Sequence record: ON287376.1
Length of the DNA: 64,000 nucleotides
Direction: 5' to 3' (one strand)
Of this stretch, positions 6,191 through 51,776 are shown piece by piece (within the stretch, counting starts at the first letter, position 1; each line of letters starts with the position of its first letter). The position numbers and the translations under genes are program-made. Below the pieces are notes generated by a model. It was not told the DNA's origin. It ran no database searches and saw only the letters and a program-made list of their open reading frames with translations.

Positions 6191-6195
6191 TCATA
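6191..6195 (-). promoter_or_regulatory. Antisense TATGA between TSP3 stop and hairpin
   Basis: TCATA 1 nt before the stem. Confidence 0.4.
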
Positions 6196-6196
6196 C

Positions 6197-6216
6197 GGCC
6201 AGGGGTTTCCCTGGCC
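6197..6216 (+). terminator. Hairpin after TSP3
   Basis: GGCCAGGG-GTTT-CCCTGGCC. Confidence 0.75.
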
Positions 6217-6222
6217 TATGTT

Positions 6223-6233
6223 TGTTCATATGA
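6223..6233 (+). promoter_or_regulatory. Putative late promoter (TATG)
   Basis: TGTTCATATGA after terminator, upstream of TSP4. Confidence 0.6.
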
Positions 6234-6265
6234 CAGTTTCCTAAAACAATCAGGATAAGTATACA

Positions 6266-8278
6266 ATGGCCGATAAATCACCAGTTAAAATATCTCAGTT
6301 ACCCGAACCTACCGGGACTGGGATTAACGATAGCGATATCTTCGCGGCATCTCGTATAACGGGAGCAGATAAGTTAGAGACTCAACGTATCACTGTCAGC
6401 GAATTGCGTAAGCTGATGGATTACGGTAACGCATTCTCTGACTTGAACGCAGCTATTGCAGCAACCGTTAAAGATCAACAGTTTTACGTATTCGTTGATG
6501 ACTCGAAAGAGTTCGTTTACCGTTACGTGAACATGGGTGGGATTGCATCCCCGGTTCTCGATATGTCAGGGAATCCGCTCAGGGAACCAACCAAAGAACT
6601 TGTTAAACATCTTGAACAAATACGTTCTAGTGTCGGGTTCGGATTGATTGGCCAGATCAAATCATTCGATGAGTTACGAGCAACAGAACCTACCTTCCCT
6701 GGCCAGCGAGTTTTACTCAGCGGATATCGAGAAGGCGCTAACTACGGTGGCGGAGAATTCTTCCATGACGTATCGGATAAAAATGCAGCAGATAACTCCG
6801 GTACAGTGGCAGTTACTCCGGGAGGAGCCCGTTGGAAACGCGTTATCGTTGATACATCTACCAACCATGCCGAGTGGTGGGGTGTGCATTATTCTCAGGC
6901 AGATAACGCCATTGCACTGAAGAAAGCGGCCGATGCATCCCGTAAAAAGATACTGATGCTTCCTCAGGGAAGTAACGCTAACCCAATTGTAATTCGTACC
7001 CCGATCGTATTCCAGACTAACTGTGGGATTAAACTTCGCGGTTGTGGCGTCAAAGACTCAACTACAATCTCCGTTCAGATCGGGCCAGGTTACGAAACCT
7101 ACGGAGCTCTTCACTTCCCAGGCCGTAACCCCACTACCAATGCCATGGAGGCAGGTTTCGCTGGGATTGAAATAAGTAATATTCAGCTGTTAGGTAACAT
7201 GAGTACTTGCCGCGGTATATACCTTCAATACCAATATCAGTCTCTGTTCAGCTACGTTAACGTAGAGCGTTTCAACGGAGCTGGTCTTTATCTCGATAAA
7301 AGTCAGGATAGCGATTTCAACTTCTTTAACGTATGGGATTGCGGTCGTACGTCGGGAGATCGTACCTCTAACGTCGATACCTTCGACATGACTAAAACGG
7401 TAGAGTCGCCTATCGTTGCAGTCAGTACTATATCCAATGACTTCTGTAACTACCTTCGTTTTAACGACTGTCAATTTGAAGACAACCACGTTTGCCCAGT
7501 GATGGATCTTAACTGGGGTATCGAGAACTACATCAATAACTGCCATGTTGAGTTTAACGCTAACTGGGACATCAAAGGTGCACCTACACCTTACTTCCTT
7601 AAGATGCAACAGGGTGTAACTAAAATCAATGGCGGTGGTATTGCCGAATACCAGGGGATCCAACACAACTACGGGGAGCTATATCTTCGCGATGTACGGT
7701 GCTCCCCAGGTATTGTGTACACGATGCTAAACGACGTGACTAGCCGCGCCGAATTCCACGGGATAAGTTTCTACTCTATCCCAGGTCTGGCTCGTAAACG
7801 TTTCACTAAGTTCGAGTACTGTAACTTTTCTCAACCAGTTACGTTGGCGTACCCTAACTCAGATATCTGGTTTGATAAATGTACTTTCGTCGGTGACTTC
7901 ACAACGACCCATGCCGGAGCTGATCTTCGGATGACTATCAGAAGTTGCTATTTCGGTGCCAATGTAACTATTGCCGACGATACGACTAATGTGTTCATGG
8001 ATGGATGTTATATAACTGGGGATGCTAACTATGGTTCCGGTGGTGGGATGTGGGGTAATAACAAAGTCCTTGGTACGTTTACTCAAACAAGTAACGGAGT
8101 CCGTTGGGTAACACCTACGTTCAAACAGGTAGTTGGTACAAGTGCCCCGACTACTGGATCATTCAGAGTAGGTGATTTGTGTTGGAATACTGCACCCACT
8201 GCAGGCGGAGTTACTCACTGGCGATGCGTTACAGCAGGTAGCCCTGGTACCTGGCGCGCAGTCTCCATCGTTTCCTAA
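6266..8278 (+). CDS. Tailspike/depolymerase TSP4 (670 aa)
   Basis: KISQLP anchor and GGGEF linker; C-terminal APTTGSFRVGDLCWNTAPTAGGVTHWRCVTAGSPGTW module typical of tailspikes. Confidence 0.85.
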   Translation: MADKSPVKISQLPEPTGTGINDSDIFAASRITGADKLETQRITVSELRKLMDYGNAFSDLNAAIAATVKDQQFYVFVDDSKEFVYRYVNMGGIASPVLDMSGNPLREPTKELVKHLEQIRSSVGFGLIGQIKSFDELRATEPTFPGQRVLLSGYREGANYGGGEFFHDVSDKNAADNSGTVAVTPGGARWKRVIVDTSTNHAEWWGVHYSQADNAIALKKAADASRKKILMLPQGSNANPIVIRTPIVFQTNCGIKLRGCGVKDSTTISVQIGPGYETYGALHFPGRNPTTNAMEAGFAGIEISNIQLLGNMSTCRGIYLQYQYQSLFSYVNVERFNGAGLYLDKSQDSDFNFFNVWDCGRTSGDRTSNVDTFDMTKTVESPIVAVSTISNDFCNYLRFNDCQFEDNHVCPVMDLNWGIENYINNCHVEFNANWDIKGAPTPYFLKMQQGVTKINGGGIAEYQGIQHNYGELYLRDVRCSPGIVYTMLNDVTSRAEFHGISFYSIPGLARKRFTKFEYCNFSQPVTLAYPNSDIWFDKCTFVGDFTTTHAGADLRMTIRSCYFGANVTIADDTTNVFMDGCYITGDANYGSGGGMWGNNKVLGTFTQTSNGVRWVTPTFKQVVGTSAPTTGSFRVGDLCWNTAPTAGGVTHWRCVTAGSPGTWRAVSIVS

Positions 8279-8282
8279 AACC

Positions 8283-8304
8283 AGAGGAGGGGAAACCCTC
8301 CTCT
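8283..8304 (+). terminator. Terminator after TSP4
   Basis: AGAGGAGGG-GAAA-CCCTCCTCT plus T-tract. Confidence 0.85.
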
Positions 8305-8313
8305 TTTATTTTG

Positions 8314-8324
8314 GGTTCCTATGA
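8314..8324 (+). promoter_or_regulatory. Putative late promoter (TATG)
   Basis: GGTTCCTATGA upstream of TSP5. Confidence 0.65.
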
Positions 8325-8355
8325 ATATTTACACAATACCATGAGGCTCACGTCC

Positions 8356-11300
8356 ATGTCAGATAACGATTTACAATTGCGCATTACCGAGTTGCCGAAG
8401 TTAGACCACTTCGATTCCAACTCTGTTCTCCCTGCGGTAGGGCGTAGTCAAGGCGCTAAGATGACGGGTAAAGTTAACTTCCGCGAAATGCGGAGTTACT
8501 TCGATTTGTCAAACGCCTACGAAACTATTAAGGACGGTGTCGATGCCACTAAGCTAGGCGATACGTTCTTCGTCTACTCTGATGGCACCAGAGTATTCGC
8601 CAACGAATACCAGAACATTGGCGGTGCCGCTACCCCAGTCCAAGATCCCAAAGAAGGAGTCATCTATTACCCAACGCGTATGGGTATTGTAGGCAGTCTG
8701 GCTGTCGGGGCCACCGTAGGCAGCTTTGATGAACTCCGTAACACCCGCCCATTAAAAGAGGGTGTTAGCATTTATCTCAGTAGCTATTATAAAGGCCTTA
8801 ATAAAGGTGGTGGTGAGTTTATTGGTTATTACGGTAAACGCGCCGACGATGGCGGTATGGTAGCTGGTGACGGGAGTAACTACTACTGGGTACGTAACAC
8901 TAACTTCGTCACTCCGGAAATGTTCGGTGCTTACGGTACTCCAGATAAAGACGACTCCGCTGCTATTGAAGGAGCGTTGAACTCCGGCTTAGATGTCCAG
9001 TTCGATGGTAGTGCTACTTATATCGCAAACCGTACTCTTGTCCTGAAGTCAATCAAATGGCAACAGTTCATCGACGGCAACGGAGCTTGGATCAAGTATT
9101 CCGATAAATCCCGTGGTTTGATTAACGAGATTGACGCCAATGGTGTTACTCAACGTTACACGAAGTTCCGTAGCTTCTTCAACTTAAATCTCCAGGGCCC
9201 TGCCACTAAGAACTCTAAGTGGAACGATGTTAACCAGTGCGATGCTTTGTGCATTAGTTACGGTGTAGTTGAGAACTGTAACTTCTACGGTTGGTCTAAC
9301 GCCCTGCGTGGTTTTGGTGAAGCCTACGTGAACAACTGCTTCGGCGACGACCTTCGTACAGCAATGTTCTCTTGCTACGATCCAGGGTATAACGAAATCA
9401 CTAACAGCTCGGTCGGTTGGTGTTCTGGTGACGCGATCATCCTTAAAGGTGGTTCAGGTAAAGCTCACAACGTCGATATCGTCTACGCAGGCTGTATTGA
9501 CAAAAACAACGAAGACGGCGCTACGGCTCTCCCAGGTTGCATTGTGTCATGTGGCGCAGATGGGGCCGGTTCTCAAAACATCCAGATCTCCAACATCAGT
9601 TGCCAATACTTCGGTTGCGCTGGTCTGAACATCCAGGGCGACGGTGTAACAGTTTCCGGTGACATGAACCTGGGTTCTATCTACGAAGATAACTTCCAGT
9701 ACGCTAACCAAGCGGCTGCTTTGTGGATTGGCGCTAAGAACTTCACCATCGGTAACCTGCACTTTAACAAAGTACACGTCGGTGTAGGGATCAACGGTAA
9801 CTGTGCGAATGGTTCGATCGGTAAGATTCGGATCATGAGCAAAACCAACCTGGCAGGATCTACTCTGTTCTCGGCAACAGATGGTCCTAACTCCCAGATT
9901 ACTAAAGTTATCGTGGACGCAATCGACTTCCTCGGCGCCTCTACGATTAACAACGACGTTTACATCAACACCGATGGTCTGTATCTGAAATCGTTCTATA
10001 TCCAATCCTTGAACAACCTTCAGGGCGGTTATACGGTTTCTCTGCGTAAGAACGCCCGTATCGGTAAAATGATTCTGGCGGCTACGACTTCAGCAAGTAC
10101 AAGTCCGGTAATGCTCATCGAGAGCGATTCCGTCATCGATGAACTGGAGTTCCGTCGTAACTTCGGTACTGCATTGGTTGTTGAGAATAATGCTCGTCCG
10201 GTAATCAAACGTCTTTCCTTCCAGTACAAACAAGGTGTCGCGGCTCCATTCGTTATTAAAGGTGACGGAACCATGACCTTGAACTGGGGCGACGTCGATA
10301 TGTTCGGCCCGAGCGTGGCTCGTCCTCAGATCGCCGGTAAGCTCGTAATGAACTCTTACCAAGGCCCTACGTTCCGCCCGTTTGATGCAGCCGTATATGC
10401 CGGCGTAAGTTACCCTAATCGTTCAGTGGATTTTGTCGAAGAACTTCGAATGGTAGGTCCTGCTAAAGAAGGGGATCAGATAGAACTTAAGAGCTACGTG
10501 GCAGGTAAAGGAATAGGGGGCGGTAATTTCATCGGGACGTTGATTACAGCTCCTGATGATGGTGGTATGGCGATTACCGGTAACGGTTACAGCTGGCTTC
10601 GTCAAGTTCAGGACAAACGTGTTAACGTAGAACACTTTGGGGCTATCGGCGATTACGGGAGGATAACTTTGAAGGGTACTGATAGTACGGTAGCCTTAGC
10701 TAACGCGATCGCAGCCGCTAAACGCTTAGGGTACTCTATATTCTTCCCATGTTCAAAGATCAACGAGGGTTACTACACGACTAAAATGTTAGTAATGACC
10801 GGGATTATGAACATAGTCGGAGATAGTATTCGTATTTACGTTGCATCTGACAAGTTCGATAAAACTAGCGGCAGTTACGTGTTATGTTGGGGTAATCCAG
10901 ATACCGATTATAAGGACATCAGTGGGTGGCCTAATATAGCCGATATTCACGTAGAGGACGTTTCTAAACGCGCATCGCCAATGAGCGGTATTTTCTTTAA
11001 ATTCACTGGTGGTAATGTCGGCAGGATTTCCGCGCGCGCATTCGATGGGGCTGGTTACCAGTTTGGTCCAGTGTACGACTCGGTATTCGCTGGGTTGGTG
11101 ACCGAACGCTGCGGTAACGAGACGACCTACTCTCAGTACTGGAGAGGCAATGGAGACGAGACTAACTCAATAACAGTTAGTAACATTCTCTGTCATGATG
11201 CGTATCATAAGGGCGTCTCGATTAACGGTTCTAAGCACAACATCGAGCGTGTCCACATTGAAGCAACCGCTACGTTGGTAACCGATGACGGTTATACCGG

Positions 11301-12210
11301 AAGTACGAAGTCCGGATTAACTTACCTTAACCATCAGTTCTATTTGGTTGCAGGGACTGTAGGTGACTTAACTGTTAACGACTATCGTAGAAGTAACGGT
11401 AAAACGTACTACGGTGATAAAGATGCCCTCGACGTAGGTAGTCATACTCGTCTTGTACTTGATTTATCATCCAGTATAGCCACCTCTTCATCAAGCGCAG
11501 CTAAATCGATAACTAGTACGTTTGGCGGATCGAATATGTATGGTTACATCGGCGCACTATCTACCGACGTTTATCATGCAGAACCTAGCGCCAGGATAAA
11601 CATTGGAAATATCTTGGTTAAAGACACTGCATTTATCTGGGAGTCTGCGCATAAGGTATCCTTTGGTCGTATCCGTAACCTAGGGGCCAGTTACGGTAAT
11701 TTCGATTCTGTTACGTTTACCCTACCGTACGTGGCGACACCAAACTCAACTGCTACTACTAATTTCACCAATTGTACTTTCAACGGCGGAGTTAATGGGT
11801 TGTGTACCGGATACAACTATTTCAACGATTGTACCATCGCTTCAATTTCGTTAAATAGTTCAGCAACTCCCGAAAGAGCTAAGTTCAACAACTGCTTGAT
11901 TACGGGAAATACAATAATCGACGGAGTAAACGCTACAATCAACTCTAAGAATTTATGGTTCTCATCATGTAGATTCTCTGGTAACGTAGCAATTAGTAAT
12001 ATCAAAAACGACGGCCCCCGTTTCACTGGGCAATGCGTATGTTACGGGACAGTAACGGGTTGGGTTACTCCAAACGGGATTCCGGTAGGTACGATGTGTG
12101 AAAGATTGGGCCCGGCAGCAGATGGAGATGGCTTAGTTTACTACTGCTCTAAGCTAGATCCCACTACTTCTGTATCCACTTGGGTACCTGTGGTTAAATT
12201 TACAGCATAG
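8356..12210 (+). CDS. Double (tandem-fused) tailspike TSP5 (1284 aa from ATG 8356)
   Basis: RITELP anchor, linker, PEMFGAYGTPDKDDSAAIEGA helix 1; second linker (GGGNFIG..PDDGG..W) and VEHFGAIGD helix 2 from about 10420; start moved to ATG 8356 (GAGG SD). Confidence 0.85.
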   Translation: MSDNDLQLRITELPKLDHFDSNSVLPAVGRSQGAKMTGKVNFREMRSYFDLSNAYETIKDGVDATKLGDTFFVYSDGTRVFANEYQNIGGAATPVQDPKEGVIYYPTRMGIVGSLAVGATVGSFDELRNTRPLKEGVSIYLSSYYKGLNKGGGEFIGYYGKRADDGGMVAGDGSNYYWVRNTNFVTPEMFGAYGTPDKDDSAAIEGALNSGLDVQFDGSATYIANRTLVLKSIKWQQFIDGNGAWIKYSDKSRGLINEIDANGVTQRYTKFRSFFNLNLQGPATKNSKWNDVNQCDALCISYGVVENCNFYGWSNALRGFGEAYVNNCFGDDLRTAMFSCYDPGYNEITNSSVGWCSGDAIILKGGSGKAHNVDIVYAGCIDKNNEDGATALPGCIVSCGADGAGSQNIQISNISCQYFGCAGLNIQGDGVTVSGDMNLGSIYEDNFQYANQAAALWIGAKNFTIGNLHFNKVHVGVGINGNCANGSIGKIRIMSKTNLAGSTLFSATDGPNSQITKVIVDAIDFLGASTINNDVYINTDGLYLKSFYIQSLNNLQGGYTVSLRKNARIGKMILAATTSASTSPVMLIESDSVIDELEFRRNFGTALVVENNARPVIKRLSFQYKQGVAAPFVIKGDGTMTLNWGDVDMFGPSVARPQIAGKLVMNSYQGPTFRPFDAAVYAGVSYPNRSVDFVEELRMVGPAKEGDQIELKSYVAGKGIGGGNFIGTLITAPDDGGMAITGNGYSWLRQVQDKRVNVEHFGAIGDYGRITLKGTDSTVALANAIAAAKRLGYSIFFPCSKINEGYYTTKMLVMTGIMNIVGDSIRIYVASDKFDKTSGSYVLCWGNPDTDYKDISGWPNIADIHVEDVSKRASPMSGIFFKFTGGNVGRISARAFDGAGYQFGPVYDSVFAGLVTERCGNETTYSQYWRGNGDETNSITVSNILCHDAYHKGVSINGSKHNIERVHIEATATLVTDDGYTGSTKSGLTYLNHQFYLVAGTVGDLTVNDYRRSNGKTYYGDKDALDVGSHTRLVLDLSSSIATSSSSAAKSITSTFGGSNMYGYIGALSTDVYHAEPSARINIGNILVKDTAFIWESAHKVSFGRIRNLGASYGNFDSVTFTLPYVATPNSTATTNFTNCTFNGGVNGLCTGYNYFNDCTIASISLNSSATPERAKFNNCLITGNTIIDGVNATINSKNLWFSSCRFSGNVAISNIKNDGPRFTGQCVCYGTVTGWVTPNGIPVGTMCERLGPAADGDGLVYYCSKLDPTTSVSTWVPVVKFTA

Positions 12211-12213
12211 AAC

Positions 12214-12235
12214 GGAGGAGGGGAAACCCTCCTCC
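12214..12235 (+). terminator. Terminator after TSP5
   Basis: GGAGGAGGG-GAAA-CCCTCCTCC plus T-tract. Confidence 0.85.
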
Positions 12236-12240
12236 TATTT

Positions 12241-12251
12241 TGTTCCTATGA
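12241..12251 (+). promoter_or_regulatory. Putative late promoter (TATG)
   Basis: TGTTCCTATGA upstream of TSP6. Confidence 0.65.
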
Positions 12252-12282
12252 AACATTACTCTCTTATACTAGGTGCAAACCA

Positions 12283-14478
12283 ATGGCCGATAATTTCAGC
12301 GGTATTAAGATTAGTCAGTTAGACGATCCTAATCGTATTAACGACAACGATATCATCCCGTTCACTAACGATGACATGGGCGATAAACAAACACGTAAAA
12401 TAAAGTTAAGTGCCCTACGTGATCAGCTCAATTACGCCAACGCTTTCCTAACCGTACAGGAAGGTTTAGCCAACACTATCCCAGGACAGATCTTCCACGT
12501 ATACGTCGATGAAACCCAGTTAGAAGTCTACGCGTACCTTAACAGTAATGGTGCAGCAGAGATCGTCCAAGATGCGCAGGGTAATCCTTTTAAAGGACAA
12601 ACCGCTAAAGCGCTGGACTTCATTCGCGGTGAGTTAGGACTTACCATGATCGGTCACGTAAGTTCCTTTGCACGACTGCGTGAAATCAAACCTCCTTTCG
12701 AAGGTGCTATTGTAGAACTTCTGGGTTGGAACGAGGGCTCCACTTACGGCGGTGGTCGTTTCCAAGGCAATCTGTCTACGGGAGCTGACGACAACGGTAT
12801 TGTTGCGGCAGGGGACGGTTTCCACTGGCGCCGTATTAATGTCGACGAAGGCATTAACCCAGAGTGGTTCGGTTACGTGAATGGTTCAGGTAATGACGTA
12901 TCCACTACGTTGAAACAAGCCATTGCTCAGGCGGTTAACTTGAAACGTCCTGTTGTATTCCGTGATGGGGCTCAAATGAGTCTAGCGGTAGCAGGGATTG
13001 AAATTCCAATAGGTGTTGATCTTACTGTGGCTAACGGTGGGAGAGCTTACTTTGAAATCACTCACGAAATCGAAACAACCGGACAGTTCCTTGTCAAAAG
13101 TAAAAACCGAATCTCCGGACTTGTCTTCAACTACCCGAAACAAACAAAAGACATCAATGCTAAGCCGATTGTGCGTTACGGACCTATTTTTGTCGGTGCT
13201 GGATTTTATTCTTCTTTCACGGGAATAAACGTAGGTAACGCTTACTACGGATTTAAGATCGGCGGTAACGACGAAGGTTCCGCATCGTATATCACGATGA
13301 AAGATATTAACGGCGCTCCTATCTATCGTGGTATCTCACTTGACCGTGTTCTGGACATCCCTCGTATTTCCGATATCCATTGGAACTACAACATGTACCT
13401 GAACTCCGATCAGGACTACGCACAATCTCTGAAACAGTGGATTCATGAGAATGGTGAGGCGTTCCACTTTGGTCGTGTTGACTTTGCTGAAGTACAACGT
13501 ATCTTTGCATTCGGGTACAGTAAGGGTATCTTCCTGAGAGGTGAGCGTTATGCAGGTAGCGCCGATTCCATTCGCTTCACAGGTTGCGACATGGACATTT
13601 GCGTTAACCCTATCTACGCTCAGAACTTTAGTGGCCAGTTAGTTATTCGTAACGGTAAGTTCACGGGTAACGGTAATAACCTGAACGGGTTGACTGCACC
13701 AGCTAACGGTTGTTTCAACTACTTCCAACGCGTGTCTCCGTATGCACGAGTCATCTTGGATTCGGTTACCATGAATAACTACGACCGCGACGCTATTCGT
13801 ACGGGTAACGACACGGTCATCAGTAACAGTAAGATCTACTCTTACGGCTTGGACAAACAGCAACGTGCAGCAGTAGCTATCATTACCGATAGCAATGCGT
13901 CGTTGACTGTAGATGCTTGTTACTTCGATGCTACTGGTCAACAGAACCGCGGCATTACAGGTATCAGTACTACCGGTCAGTTGTTAATCACTAACGGTAC
14001 TCAAATCCTTAACGCTTCGTTAGAAGGGTATCGTTGGTTAACCGGTTTTGCACTAGTTGAAGAAGGTTGTCGTATCGATGGTCCATCTCGTAACATCAAC
14101 ACGTTCATCACCAATGTCCGTCGCACTATGTACACGGATAATCTCCCTACCGCAGGCGGTGGATGGATTCGCGGCGATAAAGCGATGTTGACTAACCCCG
14201 GTATCGGTACCCAGGCAACCCAGGGCACCTACACTATCCTGGGCTGGATACGCATCACTGCCTCTAATGCCGAAGGTACCAACCACGTATTAGGTGTTGA
14301 CTGGTTAGAGATCAGATCTCAAATTGAACCTGTCCCTAAGTTCAGTTCAGCAGGTAGCGTACGACCAGCGGTAACTGCCATTGGCTATTACTTCTTCGAC
14401 ACCACATTAGGTAAACCAATTTATCTCAAATCTGCTAACCCAGCTGTTTGGGTTGATGGCAATGGTAACCCTGTTTAA
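12283..14478 (+). CDS. Tailspike/depolymerase TSP6 (731 aa)
   Basis: KISQLD anchor, GGGRF linker, INPEWFG start of helix; C-terminal GYYFFDTTLGKPIY...WVDGNGNPV module. Confidence 0.85.
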   Translation: MADNFSGIKISQLDDPNRINDNDIIPFTNDDMGDKQTRKIKLSALRDQLNYANAFLTVQEGLANTIPGQIFHVYVDETQLEVYAYLNSNGAAEIVQDAQGNPFKGQTAKALDFIRGELGLTMIGHVSSFARLREIKPPFEGAIVELLGWNEGSTYGGGRFQGNLSTGADDNGIVAAGDGFHWRRINVDEGINPEWFGYVNGSGNDVSTTLKQAIAQAVNLKRPVVFRDGAQMSLAVAGIEIPIGVDLTVANGGRAYFEITHEIETTGQFLVKSKNRISGLVFNYPKQTKDINAKPIVRYGPIFVGAGFYSSFTGINVGNAYYGFKIGGNDEGSASYITMKDINGAPIYRGISLDRVLDIPRISDIHWNYNMYLNSDQDYAQSLKQWIHENGEAFHFGRVDFAEVQRIFAFGYSKGIFLRGERYAGSADSIRFTGCDMDICVNPIYAQNFSGQLVIRNGKFTGNGNNLNGLTAPANGCFNYFQRVSPYARVILDSVTMNNYDRDAIRTGNDTVISNSKIYSYGLDKQQRAAVAIITDSNASLTVDACYFDATGQQNRGITGISTTGQLLITNGTQILNASLEGYRWLTGFALVEEGCRIDGPSRNINTFITNVRRTMYTDNLPTAGGGWIRGDKAMLTNPGIGTQATQGTYTILGWIRITASNAEGTNHVLGVDWLEIRSQIEPVPKFSSAGSVRPAVTAIGYYFFDTTLGKPIYLKSANPAVWVDGNGNPV

Positions 14479-14490
14479 TAAGGTATTAAA

Positions 14491-16680: not shown

Positions 16681-16688
16681 TATAGACA

Positions 16689-41720: not shown

Positions 41721-41731
41721 CTATTTAACGT

Positions 41732-41749
41732 CTATATTACCTTTTTGAA
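41732..41749 (+). promoter_or_regulatory. Putative early promoter
   Basis: CTATATTAC-CTTTTT-GAA. Confidence 0.7.
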
Positions 41750-41785
41750 TAGCAGTTCAAATTAACCTAAATAAGGACCACTAAA

Positions 41786-42292: not shown

Positions 42293-42305
42293 TTCTAAGG
42301 AGAAA

Positions 42306-42839: not shown

Positions 42840-42854
42840 CTCCAAGGAGGAGAC

Positions 42855-43295: not shown

Positions 43296-43311
43296 GGTGG
43301 AGGATAATAGC

Positions 43312-43707: not shown

Positions 43708-43736
43708 TTTAATCGTAAATAGGCAAAGGTCTTAAA

Positions 43737-44021
43737 ATGGCAAGGTCAGTTCTCTTTATCGCAATCCCGGTTATCGTTGTCACCGCTGTTGGTTATTACC
43801 AAAACCTCACTGCAAACACCAAGATCACATCGGAGATCGAATCGATGGGATACAAAGGGGTTAACTTGATGCAGCGTACCATGGACTGCTCAAGGGGTTA
43901 TAGCGGGGAGATCTTCACCGGGACTAGCGAAAAGAATGAACGTGTCTATGCAGCTTTCTGCACAGCAGATAACCAACCTCCGTTCATCGAGGTGATCCGT
44001 AACTCTGGAGAAATAAAGTGA
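43737..44021 (+). CDS. Membrane-anchored/exported protein with two Cys (94 aa)
   Basis: N-terminal hydrophobic helix; DCS..AFC. Confidence 0.7.
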   Translation: MARSVLFIAIPVIVVTAVGYYQNLTANTKITSEIESMGYKGVNLMQRTMDCSRGYSGEIFTGTSEKNERVYAAFCTADNQPPFIEVIRNSGEIK

Positions 44022-44698
44022 AAACCGTAGAGAAGAAGATTCGATCAGAGCTTCAAATTGCAAACTACGAGCGTTACTTCGGTGACCATTCCGTAGAACA
44101 CGCACGTAAGGTCGCAGAGCTGGCTACTCAGTTGGCCGAATTCCGCTGGACTGGTCATTGCCCGGAACGCGTAGTTTCTCAATATCGTTCATCTGATTAT
44201 TGGGAGCGTCTGCTGGATATCAACTACAAAACGTATTGTCGTCTGGTTTCCAGTGACCATTACAAATTCATCATGGACTATCTGTTCAAGATGGAGAACG
44301 CAGCCGGGAACTATCGTGAAGCTACCAAAACGGCGATCAAAGTCTTCTACGTCATCTCCGGATATTCTCAGTTCGAAGACCTGACGGATGTCGAAAAAGC
44401 ATCGATTCCGTTCATTGTCAATATGGACATCTGGCGCCGTAATATCATTGCGAGCGATTTCAGTTTCTCCGCTGAATCGGCCGAGTTCCTGGAAACATTT
44501 GTAGATCCCATCTACGTCGGCATGGATACGTTCCAGTTCGATGAAGACAACGACGATGAGTCGTGGGGTATCGCCAAGGTAACTACCGCTAAAGAGCTAC
44601 TGAGCCTGATGGTTGCAGTTAGCCGTTTCATCCTCAAACAGGATGAGGCGGAAGCGCAGGAACTCAACGGTCACGGGTTCCCTGATCGCATTGGTTGA
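44018..44698 (+). CDS. Hypothetical protein (226 aa)
   Basis: GGAG SD, coupled start, terminator follows. Confidence 0.75.
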   Translation: MKTVEKKIRSELQIANYERYFGDHSVEHARKVAELATQLAEFRWTGHCPERVVSQYRSSDYWERLLDINYKTYCRLVSSDHYKFIMDYLFKMENAAGNYREATKTAIKVFYVISGYSQFEDLTDVEKASIPFIVNMDIWRRNIIASDFSFSAESAEFLETFVDPIYVGMDTFQFDEDNDDESWGIAKVTTAKELLSLMVAVSRFILKQDEAEAQELNGHGFPDRIG

Positions 44699-44706
44699 TT
44701 AAAACG

Positions 44707-44712
44707 TCATAG
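44707..44712 (-). promoter_or_regulatory. Antisense CTATGA after the 226-aa gene
   Basis: TCATAG abutting the stem. Confidence 0.45.
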
Positions 44713-44735
44713 CCCAGGGGAATAACTCCCCTGGG
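44713..44735 (+). terminator. Terminator
   Basis: CCCAGGGGA..TCCCCTGGG. Confidence 0.8.
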
Positions 44736-44765
44736 AATTATTCACTTTGTTTAGTAAGGGACAAC

Positions 44766-45245
44766 ATGAACAGCAAGCTTTTGAATCCTGTAAAATCTGG
44801 GTTATTAATCCTGATCTCCGCATTGGTCGTCAACTTCTTTAGTGAGGGAGACTCATTCTACAACTTCCTTAAAATAATCGCCCTTTATACAGTTCTGGAA
44901 ATTGCCAGTCTGTATATCGGCGGCGCTATAAATAATAAAACCTTAGGTAACCCTAAGAAAGTTTACAGCAACAGTAAATATTACGTAGAGGCTAATAAAA
45001 GTCTCAACCATTTCTTCCTGGTAGACAAAACGCCGTACAGCAACATTAACCGGACTATCATCGAAGTCTCTGAGGCGACTGAAGAAAGGCTCAATGATAA
45101 ATCGCCGTTAATCAAAGCGTTCGTCATTACAATCCTGGAATCCCAAAACTGGTCAATGAAGGATATCCTCGAAGCCGAGTTATTCATCGAGCAGTATCCT
45201 GAAGAAATGAAATCAGCTCGTGACTTTGTAGAAATCATCGGCTAA
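44766..45245 (+). CDS. Two-TM membrane protein (159 aa)
   Basis: AAGGG SD; two N-terminal hydrophobic segments. Confidence 0.7.
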   Translation: MNSKLLNPVKSGLLILISALVVNFFSEGDSFYNFLKIIALYTVLEIASLYIGGAINNKTLGNPKKVYSNSKYYVEANKSLNHFFLVDKTPYSNINRTIIEVSEATEERLNDKSPLIKAFVITILESQNWSMKDILEAELFIEQYPEEMKSARDFVEIIG

Positions 45246-45263
45246 TTAAAAAGGAAAAGAAAA

Positions 45264-45788
45264 ATGATCGTAAGCATGATTTTAGCACTGGACAAAAACA
45301 TGTTGGTTGGTAAGGATGATACTTTACCGTGGAACGAACCTATCGACATGCAGTGGTTTAAACGCAAGACTCGGCACAAAGCCATTCTCATGGGCTACCG
45401 TACCTACATGGGTATTGGTAAACCTTTACCTGGTCGTTTGAATCTGGTGATGGCCAGCAGCGAACCAGAAGTCCCTGGTGCCACGGTAGTACCTGACCTG
45501 TACGATGCTACTCAGGCCGCTAAGAAACACCACTACAACGAGCTGGTGATCTGTGGAGGCCCTAGTTTATACAACCGTTACATTCTCTCGGTAGATAAGA
45601 TCTATCTGACCGTATTAGAGAATGAGTACGAAGGTAATGTCTACCTGAAGAACGATGTCATCGCAGAACTCATGCGCGTTCAGTCTAAAGAGACACTGAC
45701 TGAGTCGGGTTTTGTTTTGGAGGATATCCGCACCGTTGAGGGTGTTGGTCAATTCAAAATCTTTACACGTGTCCGTCGTCCGCTTTAA
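45264..45788 (+). CDS. folA: Dihydrofolate reductase
   Basis: VGKDDTLPW..DMQWFK, ILMG.RT..IGKPLPGRLNLV, VICGGPSLY, IYLTV motifs. Confidence 0.93.
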   Translation: MIVSMILALDKNMLVGKDDTLPWNEPIDMQWFKRKTRHKAILMGYRTYMGIGKPLPGRLNLVMASSEPEVPGATVVPDLYDATQAAKKHHYNELVICGGPSLYNRYILSVDKIYLTVLENEYEGNVYLKNDVIAELMRVQSKETLTESGFVLEDIRTVEGVGQFKIFTRVRRPL

Positions 45789-45807
45789 ATAATCCCTGGA
45801 GAAAAGA

Positions 45808-46140
45808 ATGAAGGCAACAACCCGTACCTACGACCGGGATACGATCGAATATATCGATGCCCTGTTGTTCGAAGGTAAGAAAGGTACCCTGGTGCAACGC
45901 GACGGTAAGATGTACTTCTACTGCGACGACATGCGCTTGGACTGCGGTGAGGTAGAAAGGACTAAACCCGTTGCTAACGACTCAACGGAAAACCTACTCT
46001 TTACCACGGCACCGAATGAAGAGTATGGTAAGGAGTTCAAGGAAAATGGTGACTTCATCATTCTTCGTGAGAACACCCATTACGGTCTGGTATTCCGTGG
46101 CAAGAAAATTCGCCCACTTAAATTTGCGGAGATGGCATGA
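45808..46140 (+). CDS. Hypothetical protein (110 aa)
   Basis: GGAG SD. Confidence 0.7.
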   Translation: MKATTRTYDRDTIEYIDALLFEGKKGTLVQRDGKMYFYCDDMRLDCGEVERTKPVANDSTENLLFTTAPNEEYGKEFKENGDFIILRENTHYGLVFRGKKIRPLKFAEMA

Positions 46141-47102
46141 TTAATTTCTTTAAGAAGTGGTTCGCTAAGAGCGAAGAAGCTCCAAAAGACACTACTTCTG
46201 AATCTAAGGTGTCAGCTGACGAAATCGTCAGTGTTGTTAAGATGATAACTATTGTTGAAGACACCAATAAGGTTATCGACTATTGCGCAGATAAATTACT
46301 CTACGTCATCACATCGAGTGACGAATTCTTCACTCGTACTTTGTCGGCAAATATTCTCCGTCTGCACAATGGGGTGATCAATATTGCCTACCGGAATACC
46401 CCAGTTGATTTACACGGCTATAACGGTGCAAGGGAATGGCTGAATAATAACGGTCATGAGGTTAAGAGTATAGACCAAGTCTTTAGGGACAAAGTTGACC
46501 AACTTATGGCTGAGCGCGGTTATTACCCAACCCATGCTAAGCAGATATTCTCCCTTAACGTAAGTAGCTTGAATAACCCATACGCTACTGATTCTTTTGA
46601 CCATCTCTGTATTGGGATGGAACGTAGCTACGTCAAGGATTCGGTCGACTTGACGCTAAAGGGATTCGACGACTACGCGCGCGACTTCGATGCAGCTAAG
46701 TCGTGGTTAGCTAAAAGCCATTTCGCTGATCGGTTTGCGCCAGTCTTAGAGCACTTACTGAAAGTTCAGGAAACCACAGTAAGTTCCCAAGAGCCGGTTA
46801 AAGAAAACCCTCTTGGCCGTGACGGAATGATTACTGTCAGAAAGGACGAGAGATTAGAAGAGTTGGTGCTTAGTACCGGCCTGTCTTTAGGGGCAATCCG
46901 TTGTTCTAAGGATAAGGTTGAAATTCCGTTCCGGCTGGACGAAATGGATCATGAATTTATCTACCGTGTTCATGACCCTCGGGCAGTCGTCACCTTCCTT
47001 TGGGAAGCGCTAGATCCGTTGGTAACTAAGGGTAAGATGACGGTGTCTAATCGCAACTACTACGGTGACGATAGCGCTTACGTTATCACTTTAACAATTT
47101 AA
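46137..47102 (+). CDS. Hypothetical protein (321 aa)
   Basis: ATGA coupling; terminator follows. Confidence 0.75.
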   Translation: MINFFKKWFAKSEEAPKDTTSESKVSADEIVSVVKMITIVEDTNKVIDYCADKLLYVITSSDEFFTRTLSANILRLHNGVINIAYRNTPVDLHGYNGAREWLNNNGHEVKSIDQVFRDKVDQLMAERGYYPTHAKQIFSLNVSSLNNPYATDSFDHLCIGMERSYVKDSVDLTLKGFDDYARDFDAAKSWLAKSHFADRFAPVLEHLLKVQETTVSSQEPVKENPLGRDGMITVRKDERLEELVLSTGLSLGAIRCSKDKVEIPFRLDEMDHEFIYRVHDPRAVVTFLWEALDPLVTKGKMTVSNRNYYGDDSAYVITLTI

Positions 47103-47109
47103 TTTAACG

Positions 47110-47135
47110 CCTTCCTCTATTCAGATAGAGGAAGG
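47110..47135 (+). terminator. Terminator
   Basis: CCTTCCTCTAT-TCAG-ATAGAGGAAGG. Confidence 0.75.
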
Positions 47136-47160
47136 TTCTATTCTGCCCTAGGAGATAACC

Positions 47161-47619
47161 ATGCTTGCAACGTTAGTAGATATCATCCGTACTTACGAAA
47201 AAGAAGTGAAACGTTACATTACCCTGCACTTCTCTGCTAACCCGAACGATTTGGCGTTTGGTTTTGGTAAACTGTATCCGGGTAAAGGTCACTTCGTCTC
47301 TCTGGCACGAGAGAACCCTAACACGATCATTGTCGATGGTCAGTTCCGTTGTGTCTGGATCGACAACGACGTCGACTTCGAAACACTCTTCCATGAGATT
47401 CGGGCTACAGAATTGCCTGTCCACGTATTCGGTTCCGGTAGTGTAAGGATGCCTGAGGATTTAGGTCCTGAGCGCATGAACTACGGGTTCCCTGTAAAAA
47501 TGGTATTCGTTGCACATGTGGCAATTGAGTACCTCCGTGGCCACGGGGTAATTGAGGTAGTCTTGGTGCGAGACATCCGTCAGCCTTCTCGCGTCTCTCA
47601 AACTTTCGAGATTGAATAA
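47161..47619 (+). CDS. Hypothetical protein (152 aa)
   Basis: AGGAG SD. Confidence 0.7.
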   Translation: MLATLVDIIRTYEKEVKRYITLHFSANPNDLAFGFGKLYPGKGHFVSLARENPNTIIVDGQFRCVWIDNDVDFETLFHEIRATELPVHVFGSGSVRMPEDLGPERMNYGFPVKMVFVAHVAIEYLRGHGVIEVVLVRDIRQPSRVSQTFEIE

Positions 47620-48005
47620 TGAGCGACAAAATCGTTCGGGTCTATTCTGGGTCACTTACCCCGGCCCTCAGCGCAGTCCTGTTGGAATATAACACCAACC
47701 AAAGCGCTATCCTTCAAGCAGCTAATAAACCTGGTGAGTTCATCTTGGGGAAAAGCGGTTTCCATTTCCTCATGGTAGACGATACCGTTGGAACGGAACG
47801 AATGAAGTTTCTTTCCGATCGAAATAACTACCCAGATGCCACCGTTGTCATTAGTTGTATTTCTACGAAATTCAGCGACCTGGTCGCACTAGGTTACATT
47901 AGTTCATCCCACATGACTATAGATGTTATTGATGGTGAACTCTGGGCTACTGTTAACCGTAGTAAGTATTTATCATTGGGGACTACGATACGCATATGTT
48001 ACTGA
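47619..48005 (+). CDS. Hypothetical protein (128 aa)
   Basis: TAATG coupling. Confidence 0.65.
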   Translation: MSDKIVRVYSGSLTPALSAVLLEYNTNQSAILQAANKPGEFILGKSGFHFLMVDDTVGTERMKFLSDRNNYPDATVVISCISTKFSDLVALGYISSSHMTIDVIDGELWATVNRSKYLSLGTTIRICY

Positions 48006-48103: not shown

Positions 48104-49762
48104 ATGGAACAGATTCAAAACGCAGGTACTGAACACGAAGCTGGTAAATCTCAATTCGACTTCGACCTGTTGGTTGAAGTAGTAAAAGAAAACATCAAAC
48201 TCAACAGTAGCGCACCTAACCTCCGTTTCGGCGAAAGCTCGTTCTTCCCACTCTTCCGCGTCAACGTGGCGCACGCTAACTCGAGCAAATCTCTGTACGA
48301 CATTTACCTGGACTCCTTCGGTGAACAGGATCGCAAAGAGCTGACCTGCCGGACCTGTAAGCGTTGGTTGGAAGCTAACGGCAATCTCGTTACCATCGGT
48401 GCCGGCGGAGAAGTTTCATCTGTCGCTTTTAATACCGAGACTGGTAAGTTGGCCGAACTGCCAGTGGAAGTCTCTAACCTGCTTCTGAAGCTCCAGAGTG
48501 CAGTTGAGCGTTCTCCGGTTAATGGTTACCGTACACTTAGCCGCGGTAGCGATACTGCAGTACCTAACGATGGTCGGTGGCTGCACTTCCACGGTACCCT
48601 GGGTTCTATTCCTCTGAACCCGGTCAAAGTTAACTACGCAGGTGAAGAGAATGCGGCGGCTGAGAAAGTATTGGTAATGCGCAATGCGCTGAACCGTTGG
48701 TCTCTGGATATTCTGTCTCATGCAAAAGCGCTGGCTACCTACGGTGCTCTGCGCAATCACCGCCATCGTAACCGCATCAAGCAGTACGTCGATAACGCTA
48801 AGCTGTACCATGCGATTAAAGACAACCGTAAGCGTGATGCACTGGTTTGGCTGTGGGCTAATACCCTGACTCCAGATCAGACTAACGTAGTCGGTACATC
48901 CCTGGGCATGTTGTTCGACGCCCTGGTGGAAGGCGGTGAGGATCTGGCACTGACTCGTTATATCCGTGAAACTGACGGTGTTAACTATCAGCGGCCGACT
49001 GAAGAGCCTACAGTACGTGAGCTCGATGAAGCACAAGAGCTGGTGTCTAAGAACGGTTGGGATCGTTCGTTCCACCGTACCGCTGCTAAGCTGGAAGACA
49101 TCCAGTACCTGTTCTGGGTACCGGGTGAAACTAAGCAGGAAGAAGGTCGCCAGGGTGTATTCAGCCAGGTGAAAACCAAGGATGCGCAACCTGAGAAGGC
49201 GGCAGTTGAAGGTGGCCGTATCTCGATTCTGGACTTCATGTCTAAAGTCGTACCTAACGCTACTTCTATCCAGTTCAAGTTCAATCCTCGCGGCGTGTTT
49301 AACTTCCTGTTCTACACGAAAGCCGAATTCGCCGATGCACCTCCTATCCTGAAGTGGGATCGCGAAGACCGCCGTAATACCGTTTCCGGTTACCAGTATA
49401 GCCAGTCAATCTATCCTGAGTATGCCGGTATCGATTCTCCACGTGTCGACGTCATTGGGATTACGGTTCCGCCTGAAACCTGGGCTAACCCAGAGATGGA
49501 ATACGGTACACTGAAGGAACCAGTGTTCTTGCTTAAAGGTGCGTACGATATCCGTAACAGCCAGAGCGCTTTGTTCCCTGAGAACATGCGCCATGAGCTG
49601 CACGGTTCCCGTCGCGTTATTGAAGCGTTCTCTTCCAGCACACCGCTGGCTGATAAAGTCGGCGTAACAGGTATTACTCCGATCAACTTCTCGCAACTGA
49701 CCGCGGAAGTCGTTACTAAAGACGGCGAGAAAGTGAACTACTCGTTTATCGGTAATCACTAA
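48104..49762 (+). CDS. Conserved large-phage hypothetical protein (552 aa; LYDIYLDSF..TCRTCKRW)
   Basis: AAGGT SD, strongly adapted codon usage, CxxC motif. Confidence 0.85.
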   Translation: MEQIQNAGTEHEAGKSQFDFDLLVEVVKENIKLNSSAPNLRFGESSFFPLFRVNVAHANSSKSLYDIYLDSFGEQDRKELTCRTCKRWLEANGNLVTIGAGGEVSSVAFNTETGKLAELPVEVSNLLLKLQSAVERSPVNGYRTLSRGSDTAVPNDGRWLHFHGTLGSIPLNPVKVNYAGEENAAAEKVLVMRNALNRWSLDILSHAKALATYGALRNHRHRNRIKQYVDNAKLYHAIKDNRKRDALVWLWANTLTPDQTNVVGTSLGMLFDALVEGGEDLALTRYIRETDGVNYQRPTEEPTVRELDEAQELVSKNGWDRSFHRTAAKLEDIQYLFWVPGETKQEEGRQGVFSQVKTKDAQPEKAAVEGGRISILDFMSKVVPNATSIQFKFNPRGVFNFLFYTKAEFADAPPILKWDREDRRNTVSGYQYSQSIYPEYAGIDSPRVDVIGITVPPETWANPEMEYGTLKEPVFLLKGAYDIRNSQSALFPENMRHELHGSRRVIEAFSSSTPLADKVGVTGITPINFSQLTAEVVTKDGEKVNYSFIGNH

Positions 49763-49769: not shown

Positions 49770-49774
49770 TCATA
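49770..49774 (-). promoter_or_regulatory. Antisense TATGA after the 552-aa gene
   Basis: TCATA 2 nt before the stem. Confidence 0.45.
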
Positions 49775-49776: not shown

Positions 49777-49795
49777 GGCGGGGATTTTCCCCGCC
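49777..49795 (+). terminator. Terminator
   Basis: GGCGGGGA-TTT-TCCCCGCC plus T-tract. Confidence 0.85.
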
Positions 49796-50434: not shown

Positions 50435-50442
50435 GAGGGGTT

Positions 50443-50832
50443 ATGAAACCTATTGAACCTGGCTGTATGGCGGTTATAATTTCCCAGACTAAAGAAGAAG
50501 ATCGTAACGAAGTCGGTAAAGTAGTAAGAGTAGTTGGGCTTGTTCCCGATGGGGAAAGTCTCTATTCTTTGGAAGGAGTGACTACGTGTACTGGGGAGTC
50601 GATTAAATCAACTGGGGCATTCATACCGGATGTTAGAAGTTGGGTAGTTCTTGGTGACATCGTGGTCGCTAAACTTACCACGGATAAGTACGGTACCATC
50701 TATGCTAAAGGTGAAATCACAATCGGTGGCTTTACCGGTAACGGGATGGTTGCCGAACATCGTTTAATGCGTATCGATGGTTTTGAGGACGAAGACAAAG
50801 CCAAAGAAAAAGATTTACTGCTTACGGAGTAG
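50443..50832 (+). CDS. Hypothetical protein (129 aa)
   Basis: AGGAGG SD. Confidence 0.7.
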   Translation: MKPIEPGCMAVIISQTKEEDRNEVGKVVRVVGLVPDGESLYSLEGVTTCTGESIKSTGAFIPDVRSWVVLGDIVVAKLTTDKYGTIYAKGEITIGGFTGNGMVAEHRLMRIDGFEDEDKAKEKDLLLTE

Positions 50833-50838
50833 AAAAAC

Positions 50839-51279
50839 ATGTACCTCCCAATTACTTTTGACCTGCTGCGCGAGAAATCAACGGGAACGATCGTTGAAGT
50901 AACTTCTTCTGATGCGGAACAGTCTACCATCAGTTTTGTTCCAGTGATCGATAAAGAAGGTAATGTCATTACATCCGGCATTACCGATATCCTCTCTCTG
51001 GAAGAGATGGTTAAGCAGTTCGAACTACTGGAGAACCTATCTTACTTCAACGTGCGTGAAGAAGGTCAGATGGACTTTGGTAGCATGGTAGTCGTTAAGG
51101 ATAACGATGAAGTTAACAAGCTGATGCTTGCCTACTACGAATACATGGATCAACCGATGATGCTCCAGTATCTCGAGATCGATGTAGAGTGGCCGGCATT
51201 GGCTGTAGTAATGAACCAGGCTCTCTTTGTAGAGTCGGTAAACAAAGTCAGTAAACTCATTCAAACTGTTAAAGGTTAA
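50839..51279 (+). CDS. Hypothetical protein (146 aa)
   Basis: GGAG SD. Confidence 0.7.
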   Translation: MYLPITFDLLREKSTGTIVEVTSSDAEQSTISFVPVIDKEGNVITSGITDILSLEEMVKQFELLENLSYFNVREEGQMDFGSMVVVKDNDEVNKLMLAYYEYMDQPMMLQYLEIDVEWPALAVVMNQALFVESVNKVSKLIQTVKG

Positions 51280-51289
51280 GGAAAGTCAA

Positions 51290-51745
51290 ATGTCCGATAA
51301 AACTATTGCCCGTCGTGTCTTCATCGCTTCTTCTGATCTGGTTAACAAAATAGGCTATACGGCCTTTAACCAGGTCTTGCTGAACGCCAAACATATTCAG
51401 TGTGCATTCGGGTTACCTTACCCAGACGCAGGCTCTGCTAAGCTGGCAGAACCGTATTCCTACTCTCCGCTGCCAAACAACGGTTACGATACCGTAGAGA
51501 ACCCGGTAGCTTATCTGCACGATTTCCGCCGTACTCCTTCTGGTATCTACGCACTGATCTCCCCGATGGAAGGTTGCACTAACAAAACCTTCCTGAAGGC
51601 GCTGGCAGGTACGCAGCAGACGTTCAAGTTCGTTCCACGCGTCATCCTGAAGAAAGCGAAACTCAAGTCAGTGAACAACTTCCACCTGCAGGCGACCAAC
51701 CGGGACTTCCACGAGATCATCACTTTTGACATGATCTGGAAATAA
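51290..51745 (+). CDS. Hypothetical protein (151 aa)
   Basis: AAGGA SD; terminator follows. Confidence 0.75.
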   Translation: MSDKTIARRVFIASSDLVNKIGYTAFNQVLLNAKHIQCAFGLPYPDAGSAKLAEPYSYSPLPNNGYDTVENPVAYLHDFRRTPSGIYALISPMEGCTNKTFLKALAGTQQTFKFVPRVILKKAKLKSVNNFHLQATNRDFHEIITFDMIWK

Positions 51746-51749
51746 CTAA

Positions 51750-51755
51750 TCATAG
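51750..51755 (-). promoter_or_regulatory. Antisense CTATGA after the 151-aa gene
   Basis: TCATAG just before the stem. Confidence 0.45.
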
Positions 51756-51756
51756 C

Positions 51757-51776
51757 GGGTAGGGATTTCCCTACCC
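51757..51776 (+). terminator. Terminator
   Basis: GGGTAGGG-ATTT-CCCTACCC. Confidence 0.85.

Follow-up and report, generated by a model that had tools for sequence, protein, structure and literature searches.

The transcription signals closest to those considered here are known from phiKZ and its relatives. Late transcription of phiKZ by the non-virion RNA polymerase (nvRNAP) uses the four-base core TATG and starts at its G (PMC7598289, PMC4666361); all four bases are required in vitro (Yakunina et al. 2015, PMC4666361), and a pocket of the nvRNAP subunit GP123 binds TATG as single-stranded non-template DNA (Chen et al. 2026, PMC12809450). These four bases are the sole known signal for site choice by nvRNAP in phiKZ-like phages, and its specificity is called puzzling in the papers. 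The terminators of such phages have also been mapped. ONT-cappable-seq gave 61 phiKZ terminators that share a stem-loop with TTAT after it (Putzeys et al. 2024, PMC10914365), and the same source gives six bidirectional terminator regions in phiKZ and places 9% of the terminators antisense to genes across six phages. Of the 132 termination sites of 201phi2-1, 15 act in both directions, and the hairpin is made longer by a second motif (Poppeliers et al. 2024, PMC11512511). Here we analyse a 64,000-nt stretch of DNA (the window) from Serratia phage vB_SmaM-Kodama, in which several terminator-like hairpins carry at their 5' foot the word TCATA, the reverse complement of TATGA, which places the late-promoter core on the antisense strand. 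A preliminary description of the window, correct in taking TATG with its start at G for the phiKZ late core, had read these words as late promoters firing back into the genes that end there.

The window matches record ON287376.1 with 100% identity (about 124001–188000 of the record, plus strand). Kodama belongs to Moabitevirus, a genus of phiKZ-like, nucleus-forming jumbo phages that have both virion and non-virion multisubunit RNA polymerases. Eight records, among them 2050HW, Moabite and Haymo, are 95–98% identical to the window, and Totoro is 84% identical. The plus strand holds 87 of the 88 annotated genes of the window; the only minus-strand gene encodes 68 amino acids (aa) and shares the hairpin at 23130–23153 with a convergent plus-strand gene. 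The literature searched yielded no Moabitevirus transcriptome.

The seven TCATA words first reported in the window (6191, 29752, 38546, 41021, 44707, 49770 and 51750) and the two further CATA words (23125 and 28506) all read as described. Each of the nine ends 0–2 nt 5' of a GC-rich stem and begins 0–8 nt past a stop codon, and at 29752, 44707 and 51750 the plus strand reads TCATAG, giving the CTATGA that had been noted at three sites. Defining a perfect hairpin as a Watson-Crick palindrome with a stem of at least 7 bp, we found 24 in the window, 21 of them intergenic, and in addition several with a wobble pair or a mismatch; the earlier figure was about 29. TCATA itself is rare in the window (23 copies against 76 expected from base composition), and 12 of the 23 lie within the 4,174 nt of intergenic DNA, seven of them at hairpin feet. 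The estimate that this exceeds chance holds up well, as 7 of the 21 intergenic perfect hairpins have TCATA in the slot 0–2 nt before the stem, while no 5-mer out of the 1,024 exceeded five hits in any of 20,000 random samples of 21 intergenic positions. The genome-wide count of hairpin flanks that had been proposed was also carried out. Kodama was analysed as seven separate pieces, with the 28 annotated minus-strand genes fixed and 86 of the 88 annotated stop codons of the window recovered by the gene calls; its 121 perfect hairpins gave 97 oriented terminator candidates, hairpins at convergent junctions being entered once per strand. CATA occupies the slot 0–3 nt before the stem in 33 of the 97 (0.7–1.5 expected, Poisson P < 1e-32) and is the top 4-mer there. 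TCATA is a subset of this wider CATA rule, the base preceding the foot CATA being T in 15, A in 13 and G in 5 cases and the base following it G in 19. The foot motif is real and beyond chance, and the CATA flank, which reads TATG on the antisense strand, is under selection at the terminators of Moabitevirus and phiKZ.

The Kodama hairpins are terminators by their position at gene 3' ends, because they occur at convergent but not at divergent junctions: of the convergent junctions 18 of 19 have a perfect hairpin, of the divergent ones 0 of 19 and of the co-directional ones 57 of 294. Several have counterparts annotated as terminators in the Moabite record. At the seven TCATA sites the stems comprise 8–9 perfect pairs and lie 5–14 nt after the stop codon, and for the six covered by the fold test the fold energy with flanks is -16.9 to -20.2 kcal/mol. 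As to the T-run, a terminator scan accepts the hairpins at 6197, 29759 and 41028 and not those at 38553 and 44713, which are the two out of four TCATA hairpins between 28 and 48 kb that have no canonical run; by eye it is present at 49777 and weak at 51757. TAT begins 0–4 nt past the stem in 62 of the 97 Kodama hairpins, the next base being T in 35 and G in 19, and in six of the seven TCATA sites of the window (the exception is 38553); this combination of stem-loop and TAT flank fits the description of phiKZ-type terminators. Two simple accounts of the 5' word were rejected. CATA-bearing hairpins are not weaker sense terminators, since neither T-tail nor stem length differs between them and other hairpins, and TCATAG or TCATAA is not a backup stop codon, since inspection by eye puts the stop within it in frame at 29752 and out of frame at 41021, 44707 and 51750.

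The explanation that we favour, and hold tentatively as quite possible though short of probable, is that the foot CATA is the mirrored half of the terminator flank and makes the hairpin a two-way stop. On this proposal phiKZ-like terminators would carry an inverted pair of flanks, CATA 0–3 nt before the stem and TAT(G/T) 0–4 nt after it, with TCATA as the Moabitevirus form of a family-wide element. Read on the minus strand, the 5' element would be a hairpin, a short spacer and TATG, as at convergent gene ends and as in the phiKZ terminators mapped by experiment, with TTAT after the stem-loop, and the mirrored flank would make the hairpin an insulator against polymerase travelling in the antisense direction. 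The flank may be read as DNA by nvRNAP, through the GP123 pocket on non-template TATG, and binding of TATG beside a freshly formed hairpin might favour pausing and release over initiation. Separately, Moabitevirus would have purged the sense-side G from the flanks that precede early genes, TATG at that place amounting to a late start signal, and this purge would leave the antisense copy conspicuous.

The convergent junctions are one line of evidence. There a single word serves two terminators, as 5' CATA for one gene and as 3' TATG for the gene opposite (23125–23159 in the window, and 26172, 83629, 76260 and 260919 in the record), so that hairpin, spacer and TATG end genes on both strands; the minus-strand genes at 19728, 70169 and 93091 of the record end with the same arrangement. 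Because the same module stands at the gene ends of both strands, the co-directional cases are read most simply as a module that faces backward. The minus-strand TATG at the feet lies 0–3 nt after the stem, the distance of the element from the stem is alike on both sides, and the stems are palindromic, so that the hairpin can form on either strand. Among flanks that have a TAT, a G comes next in 15 of 21 convergent and in 4 of 44 co-directional cases. Where a foot TATG precedes a tailspike gene on the sense strand (6217 and 16720), a separate TATGA follows 12–13 nt later, at a leader length of 33–34 nt. The 12 nt on the upstream side of the 56 antisense intergenic TATG sites have a mean GC content of 56% (at least 58% in 37 of the 56), and most of these sites abut a stem; at sense promoter-like TATG sites the mean is 39%.

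CATA is the exact reverse complement of TATG, and the two flanks could instead extend the stem by pairing with each other, the 5' CATA with the 3' TAT(G), in the manner of the A-tract and U-tract of bacterial terminators. The second, hairpin-lengthening motif of 201phi2-1 (PMC11512511) would be a parallel, and the 5' ATA is paired in the minimum-energy fold in 25 of 48 cases, those at 6191 and 51750 included. Pairing was found, however, in only two of the six TCATA sites of the window covered by the fold test, the 5' ATA and 3' TAT co-occur at the level of chance (Fisher P 0.19 overall, 0.76 for co-directional hairpins), the spacer lengths are mismatched between the two sides, and the C stands opposite a G in 1 of 15 co-directional cases. 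Co-occurrence, spacer register, C–G matching and folds together led us to reject stem extension as the main cause at co-directional sites, and as a general account we consider it very unlikely. The same C is unpaired in 14 of the 15 co-directional cases; being without a pairing partner, it appears to be selected as sequence and not as structure, which also counts in favour of the antisense promoters proposed in the preliminary description.

Comparison between phages bears on whether the word has any function. TCATA is the same in Moabite at five of the six sites compared. Totoro retains it at the dUTPase, thymidylate synthase (thyA) and 226-aa gene sites though the bases on both sides differ, has A for the T before CATA at the 151-aa gene site, and has lost the motif where the hairpin itself was replaced; it has new motifs at the orthologues of Kodama 34192, 36926 and 55863, where Kodama is without one. 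Compensatory changes in the stems keep the pairing, for example at the 151-aa gene site. As the motif has been kept, lost and re-created between Kodama, Moabite and Totoro, these alignments argue that it is held by selection, with turnover, and was not inherited from one duplicated terminator. The opposite view, that the words all descend from a single terminator or merely reflect base composition near stop codons, could point to the G run, AT-rich loop and C run that several stems share. Against it, stems, spacers and upstream bases vary among the sites, the motif was gained in Totoro as well as lost elsewhere and recurs in phiKZ, and the permutation and Poisson tests exclude composition. We regard this view, refuted by the independent gains and the statistics, as barely credible. 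Two terminators that read CACAG in Kodama read CATAG in Totoro.

Outside the genus, the phiKZ sequence (accession from PMC8244752) has CATA 1–3 nt 5' of the stem at many terminators; within the 92 kb covered the base in front of it is A or G, and T does not occur there. The genome of PaZh_1 (species Phikzvirus phiKZ) matches phiKZ at 96–99% identity along most of a 50-kb comparison. It contains 85 intergenic hairpins, and CATA stands in 42 of its 100 oriented candidates (19 of 70 co-directional, 23 of 30 convergent). In KpSz_1 (capsid protein 69% identical) CATA is mainly convergent, with 7 of 12 flanks that have a 5' ATA, and occurs at 2 of 25 co-directional terminators, which indicates that the co-directional habit is not universal. 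Genes in PaZh_1 and KpSz_1, both unannotated, come from a cruder both-strand open reading frame caller, and the split into convergent and co-directional classes is approximate for both.

What had been proposed at the outset, that late transcription is initiated at the minus-strand TATG(A) of the foot and that an RNA runs from its G back over the gene just ended and over early and middle operons, has several points in its favour. The foot word is the complete known core of the late promoter, and Kodama encodes a GP123 homologue (record 54755–56368, 30% identity, E 6e-71) with a partly conserved pocket, 8 of whose 16 residues are identical and 3 conservative in a low-identity pairwise alignment that leaves single positions uncertain. 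In the window CATA is the most depleted plus-strand tetramer, with 74 copies against 283 expected from composition and 167 from a second-order model, and plus-strand TATG stands at 0.51 of expectation. When synonymous codons were shuffled within 339 Kodama genes, in-gene CATA (antisense TATG) remained at 0.62 of expectation (z -10) and sense TATG at 0.60 (z -18), while control tetramers of the same composition lay at 0.96–1.02. TATG has been purged from Kodama genes on both strands beyond what codon usage accounts for, and with the controls near 1, a bare TATG appears to be a hazard. Other plus-strand tetramers are also depleted in the window (CTAG to 0.29, ATAG to 0.31, TGTG and CACA each to 0.38 of expectation).

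Sense-strand sites show the word in what looks like its promoter role, and here the preliminary description was accurate: plus-strand TATGA precedes the tailspike-like genes at a leader of 32–34 nt, and the fixed leader length before every such gene is a further point for TATG as a working late signal in Kodama. The copies lie at 1717–1721 (32 nt before the 754-aa tailspike-like gene), 6229–6233 (34 nt before the 670-aa gene; a second site, distinct from the foot TATG at 6217), 8320–8324 (33 nt before the annotated start at 8356), 12247–12251 (33 nt before the start at 12283), 16733–16737 (33 nt before the start at 16769; again a second site after the foot TATG at 16720) and 19313–19317 (33 nt before the start at 19349). 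Another plus-strand TATGA, at 24261–24265, is 53 nt before the start of the 683-aa gene at 24317, and one on the minus strand, at 23407–23411 (plus-strand CATA at 23407), is 39 nt before the only minus-strand gene of the window, with no adjacent hairpin. The tailspike-like genes, annotated as AmsF-like or pectin lyase, form a run of at least ten large genes at 62–28445, and in the part up to 21166 most are each equipped with a terminator hairpin and with a TATGA at 32–34 nt, which suggests a duplicated expression cassette.

Further support for backward-firing promoters comes from the early regions, whose limits were set by early-promoter-like plus-strand words, five of them in the window and eight outside it. 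There TATG is found in 0 of 30 sense flanks and 11 of 30 antisense flanks, as expected if a hairpin-adjacent TATG is able to fire: a forward G removed for that reason would mean that the backward copy, which was kept, could fire too. At the thyA site Moabite and Totoro retain TCATA though the hairpin is without a sense T-run, and there is a precedent in AR9, a related jumbo phage, seven of whose late promoters drive antisense RNA late in infection (PMC5312081). The base before CATA is T, which gives TATGA as before the tailspike-like genes, in 11 and A in 5 co-directional cases against 4 and 8 convergent ones, a difference in the expected direction that is not significant (P 0.12); T against A was accordingly rejected as a marker of the two classes.

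The points on the other side concern context and transcripts. The phiKZ map has 149 start sites, 66 of them with the late motif, and only four antisense RNAs with a defined start (PMC10914365), against 42 equivalent feet in the phiKZ-species genome PaZh_1, and this disparity gives indirect support to the two-way stop. TATG is necessary but insufficient for the late promoter, since the downstream region alters activity about 30-fold (PMC4666361). The DNA upstream of most antisense copies is a GC-rich stem, whereas that of sense sites and of the likely P119L site is AT- or pyrimidine-rich, and no minus-strand gene lies downstream of the antisense TATG in the gene arrays, unlike at the phage's own late sites. 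Convergent late genes also have the element between them, and there a late antisense shut-off would work against the phage; in addition, one of the seven TCATA sites of the window follows a tailspike, that is a late, gene. The sequence part of the original proposal stands, with its TATG core, GP123 homologue, depletion and early-region asymmetry, while the antisense RNAs that it calls for are scarce where phiKZ has been mapped; we consider active antisense promoters at the feet a serious candidate but a doubtful one.

A corollary of the same proposal, that hairpin and TATG together form the promoter, the hairpin supplying the melted DNA that nvRNAP needs, found no support. Linear PCR fragments of P119L are transcribed by nvRNAP (PMC4666361); the likely TATG of this promoter, in the divergent gp118/gp119 region of phiKZ, has AT-rich DNA upstream and no GC hairpin, and in the 19 divergent regions of Kodama sense TATG lies 25–70 nt before structural genes with no hairpin nearby. 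With linear fragments transcribed and sense late sites free of hairpins, late promoters operate without them. One divergent pair (L003 16405–16430, record coordinates) has CATA and TATG back to back round a 6-base palindrome with no GC hairpin, a compact, outward-facing pair of late-promoter-like sites.

Several observations weigh against a two-way stop. Kodama co-directional flanks are asymmetric, with TATG in 19 of 58 on the antisense and 4 of 58 on the sense side (P 8e-4), and the early-region counts given above point the same way (P 3e-4). Sense terminators work with T in place of G, which makes the G dispensable for termination there. In the TCATA class the minus strand has no T-run after TATG (it reads TATGA, then most often C); hairpins with A before CATA give minus-strand TATGT followed by T-rich DNA. 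Seven of 15 spacers in the TCATA class contain G, while sense spacers are mostly pyrimidines. For the transcribing complex an incomplete GP123 pocket has been described (PMC12809450), and both pausing and release of nvRNAP at TATG and antisense transcripts in Moabitevirus are putative. The flanks of PaZh_1 are, for their part, symmetric (TATG in 19 and 19 of 70 co-directional cases), and the comparison suggests that Moabitevirus lost the forward-facing G before early genes and kept the backward-facing one.

The asymmetry would be accounted for directly by a signal in the sense RNA, in which CAUA and the hairpin at the mRNA 3' end are recognised by a protein for 3' processing, stability or nuclear export. 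Each terminator would then have its own 5' CATA, and a 3' TATG only where an opposing gene imposes it, in keeping with the frequencies of G at convergent and co-directional flanks (15 of 21 against 4 of 44). CATA is moreover the most depleted tetramer of the coding strand, and the authors of the phiKZ map suggest a shared action of conserved terminators at the RNA level (PMC10914365). Such a signal leaves the equal in-gene depletion of TATG unexplained, which recognition of DNA on both strands explains; the binding protein and cleavage site are purely putative, and an Rfam scan of the window returned no family match. We judge it unlikely, and a small share of the probability we set aside for readings that we have not considered.

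The individual sites of the window differ in what surrounds the shared word. TCATA at 6191–6195 follows the 710-aa tailspike-like gene (coding sequence, CDS, 4058–6190) and is separated by 1 nt from the hairpin at 6197–6216 (8-bp stem, 4-nt loop), after which TATG lies at 6217–6220; here CATA and TATG are paired in the predicted fold. After the dUTPase gene (CDS 28603–29745), TCATA at 29752–29756 has a 2-nt spacer and a hairpin at 29759–29782; the site is the same in Moabite, whose record annotates a terminator, and is retained in Totoro with a change of flank. The thymidylate synthase gene (CDS 37688–38542) is followed by TCATA at 38546–38550, a 2-nt spacer and a hairpin at 38553–38577 without a T-run, and Moabite and Totoro retain TCATA and stem while loop, 3' flank and downstream gene differ. 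Both have directly after this hairpin an extra small alanyl-tRNA-synthetase-like gene (L008 20246–20704; L014 10891–11349) that is not in Kodama (38543–38602), and in both a ribosome-binding site lies directly 3' of the hairpin, with no T-run.

TCATA at 41021–41025, with a 2-nt spacer and a hairpin at 41028–41049, follows a 286-aa gene (CDS 40159–41019) and has no conserved counterpart in Totoro or Moabite, whose genes are ordered differently here. At 44707–44711, after a 226-aa gene (CDS 44018–44698), the spacer is 1 nt and the hairpin at 44713–44735 has a weak T-run; GTCATAG is retained in Moabite and Totoro with the upstream bases altered. The 552-aa gene (CDS 48104–49762) is followed by TCATA at 49770–49774, a 2-nt spacer and a hairpin at 49777–49795, with an early-promoter-like word 3' of it at 49831; Totoro has a replacement hairpin here, once more with CATA after the stop codon. 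The last of the seven, at 51750–51754 with a 2-nt spacer and a hairpin at 51757–51776, follows a 151-aa gene (CDS 51290–51745) and reads ACATAG in Totoro, where the outermost stem pair is changed on both sides.

Of the two further words, CATA at 23125–23128, with a 1-nt spacer, a hairpin at 23130–23153 and TATG at 23156–23159, is common to the convergent CDS 22915–23121 (plus strand) and 23165–23368 (minus strand), and its minus-strand reading is the TATG after the minus-strand gene's own terminator. CATA at 28506–28509, upstream of the dUTPase gene, has a 2-nt spacer and a hairpin at 28512–28537 (11 pairs, one of them G-T) followed by a T-run, and is absent in Totoro. An additional CATA at 12206–12209 overlaps the stop codon of a 1299-aa gene and lies 4 nt 5' of the hairpin at 12214–12235. 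A 12-bp perfect hairpin at 56420–56449, terminator-like, lies within the reading frame of a 172-aa gene (CDS 56001–56519), with CATA 1 base before the stem and TTATG 2 bases after it.

Two other features of the sequence concern promoters. A nine-base AT-rich word starting CTATAT is found on the plus strand at 30686, 41732, 49831, 55935 and 59568, upstream of arrays of small genes; it has two flavours according to the sequence that follows, and 13 of its 16 copies genome-wide lie on the plus strand, at 154–240 kb of the record. From their placement these words are probably early promoters, for the virion polymerase, and perhaps also middle promoters. Sites resembling sigma-70-type promoters are scarce (17 found against 27.1 ± 4.6 expected at 1–20000, and 9 against 31.2 ± 6.3 at 28000–47900), which fits a phage independent of the host polymerase.

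Three sequence handles on the site choice of nvRNAP emerge: the purge of the tetramer within genes, the backward copy kept or re-created at terminator feet, and the absence of a forward copy before early genes. Whether it serves as a stop or a start, the backward TATG points to terminators as sites where nvRNAP reads the tetramer. If the antisense promoters were real, each early or middle operon would end with a late antisense start, and a genome-wide shut-off would be built into the terminators; if the word is only the mirrored half of a known motif, it takes what is published for phiKZ and 201phi2-1 a modest step further, into another genus. In a related reading TATG may be a start signal for nvRNAP in one context and a stop signal beside a hairpin.

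Set against known systems, the Kodama terminators resemble those of phiKZ and 201phi2-1 in having a GC-rich stem-loop after the stop codon followed by TAT and in serving both strands at convergent junctions, and phiKZ hairpins are like those of Kodama in having CATA before the stem. They differ in the order of the arms, the G-rich arm usually coming first in Kodama and the C-rich arm in the phiKZ motif; in the base before CATA, for which Kodama and Totoro mostly have T but phiKZ has A or G; and in the sense-side G, found in 4 of 58 cases in Kodama and 19 of 70 in the phiKZ-species genome. Bacterial bidirectional intrinsic terminators have an A-tract before the hairpin and a U-tract after it. 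They share with the Kodama elements a palindrome with complementary flanks, a place between convergent genes and, on the reading favoured here, a stop from either side, whereas in Kodama the flank is a specific word that is frequent in one-way arrays, where its C is unpaired. With the phiKZ late promoter the foot words have in common the tetramer itself, read on the minus strand, and Kodama also encodes a GP123 homologue and has TATGA at a fixed distance before its tailspike-like genes; the foot words differ in having no gene on that strand, in the GC-rich stem upstream and in that their start sites are putative. The part of the phiKZ terminator paper cited here describes the stem and the 3' TTAT, and no 5' element (PMC10914365). 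Closest to an antisense shut-off are the seven AR9 late promoters already mentioned (PMC5312081), the LUZ19 promoter P001 (PMC10914365) and the early antisense RNAs of PAK_P3 (PMC4933390). In these, as would hold for Kodama, a phage promoter faces back into another temporal class and a shut-off has been proposed; theirs are mapped transcripts, none described in the cited parts at the foot of a terminator, whereas the Kodama sites are so far read from the DNA.

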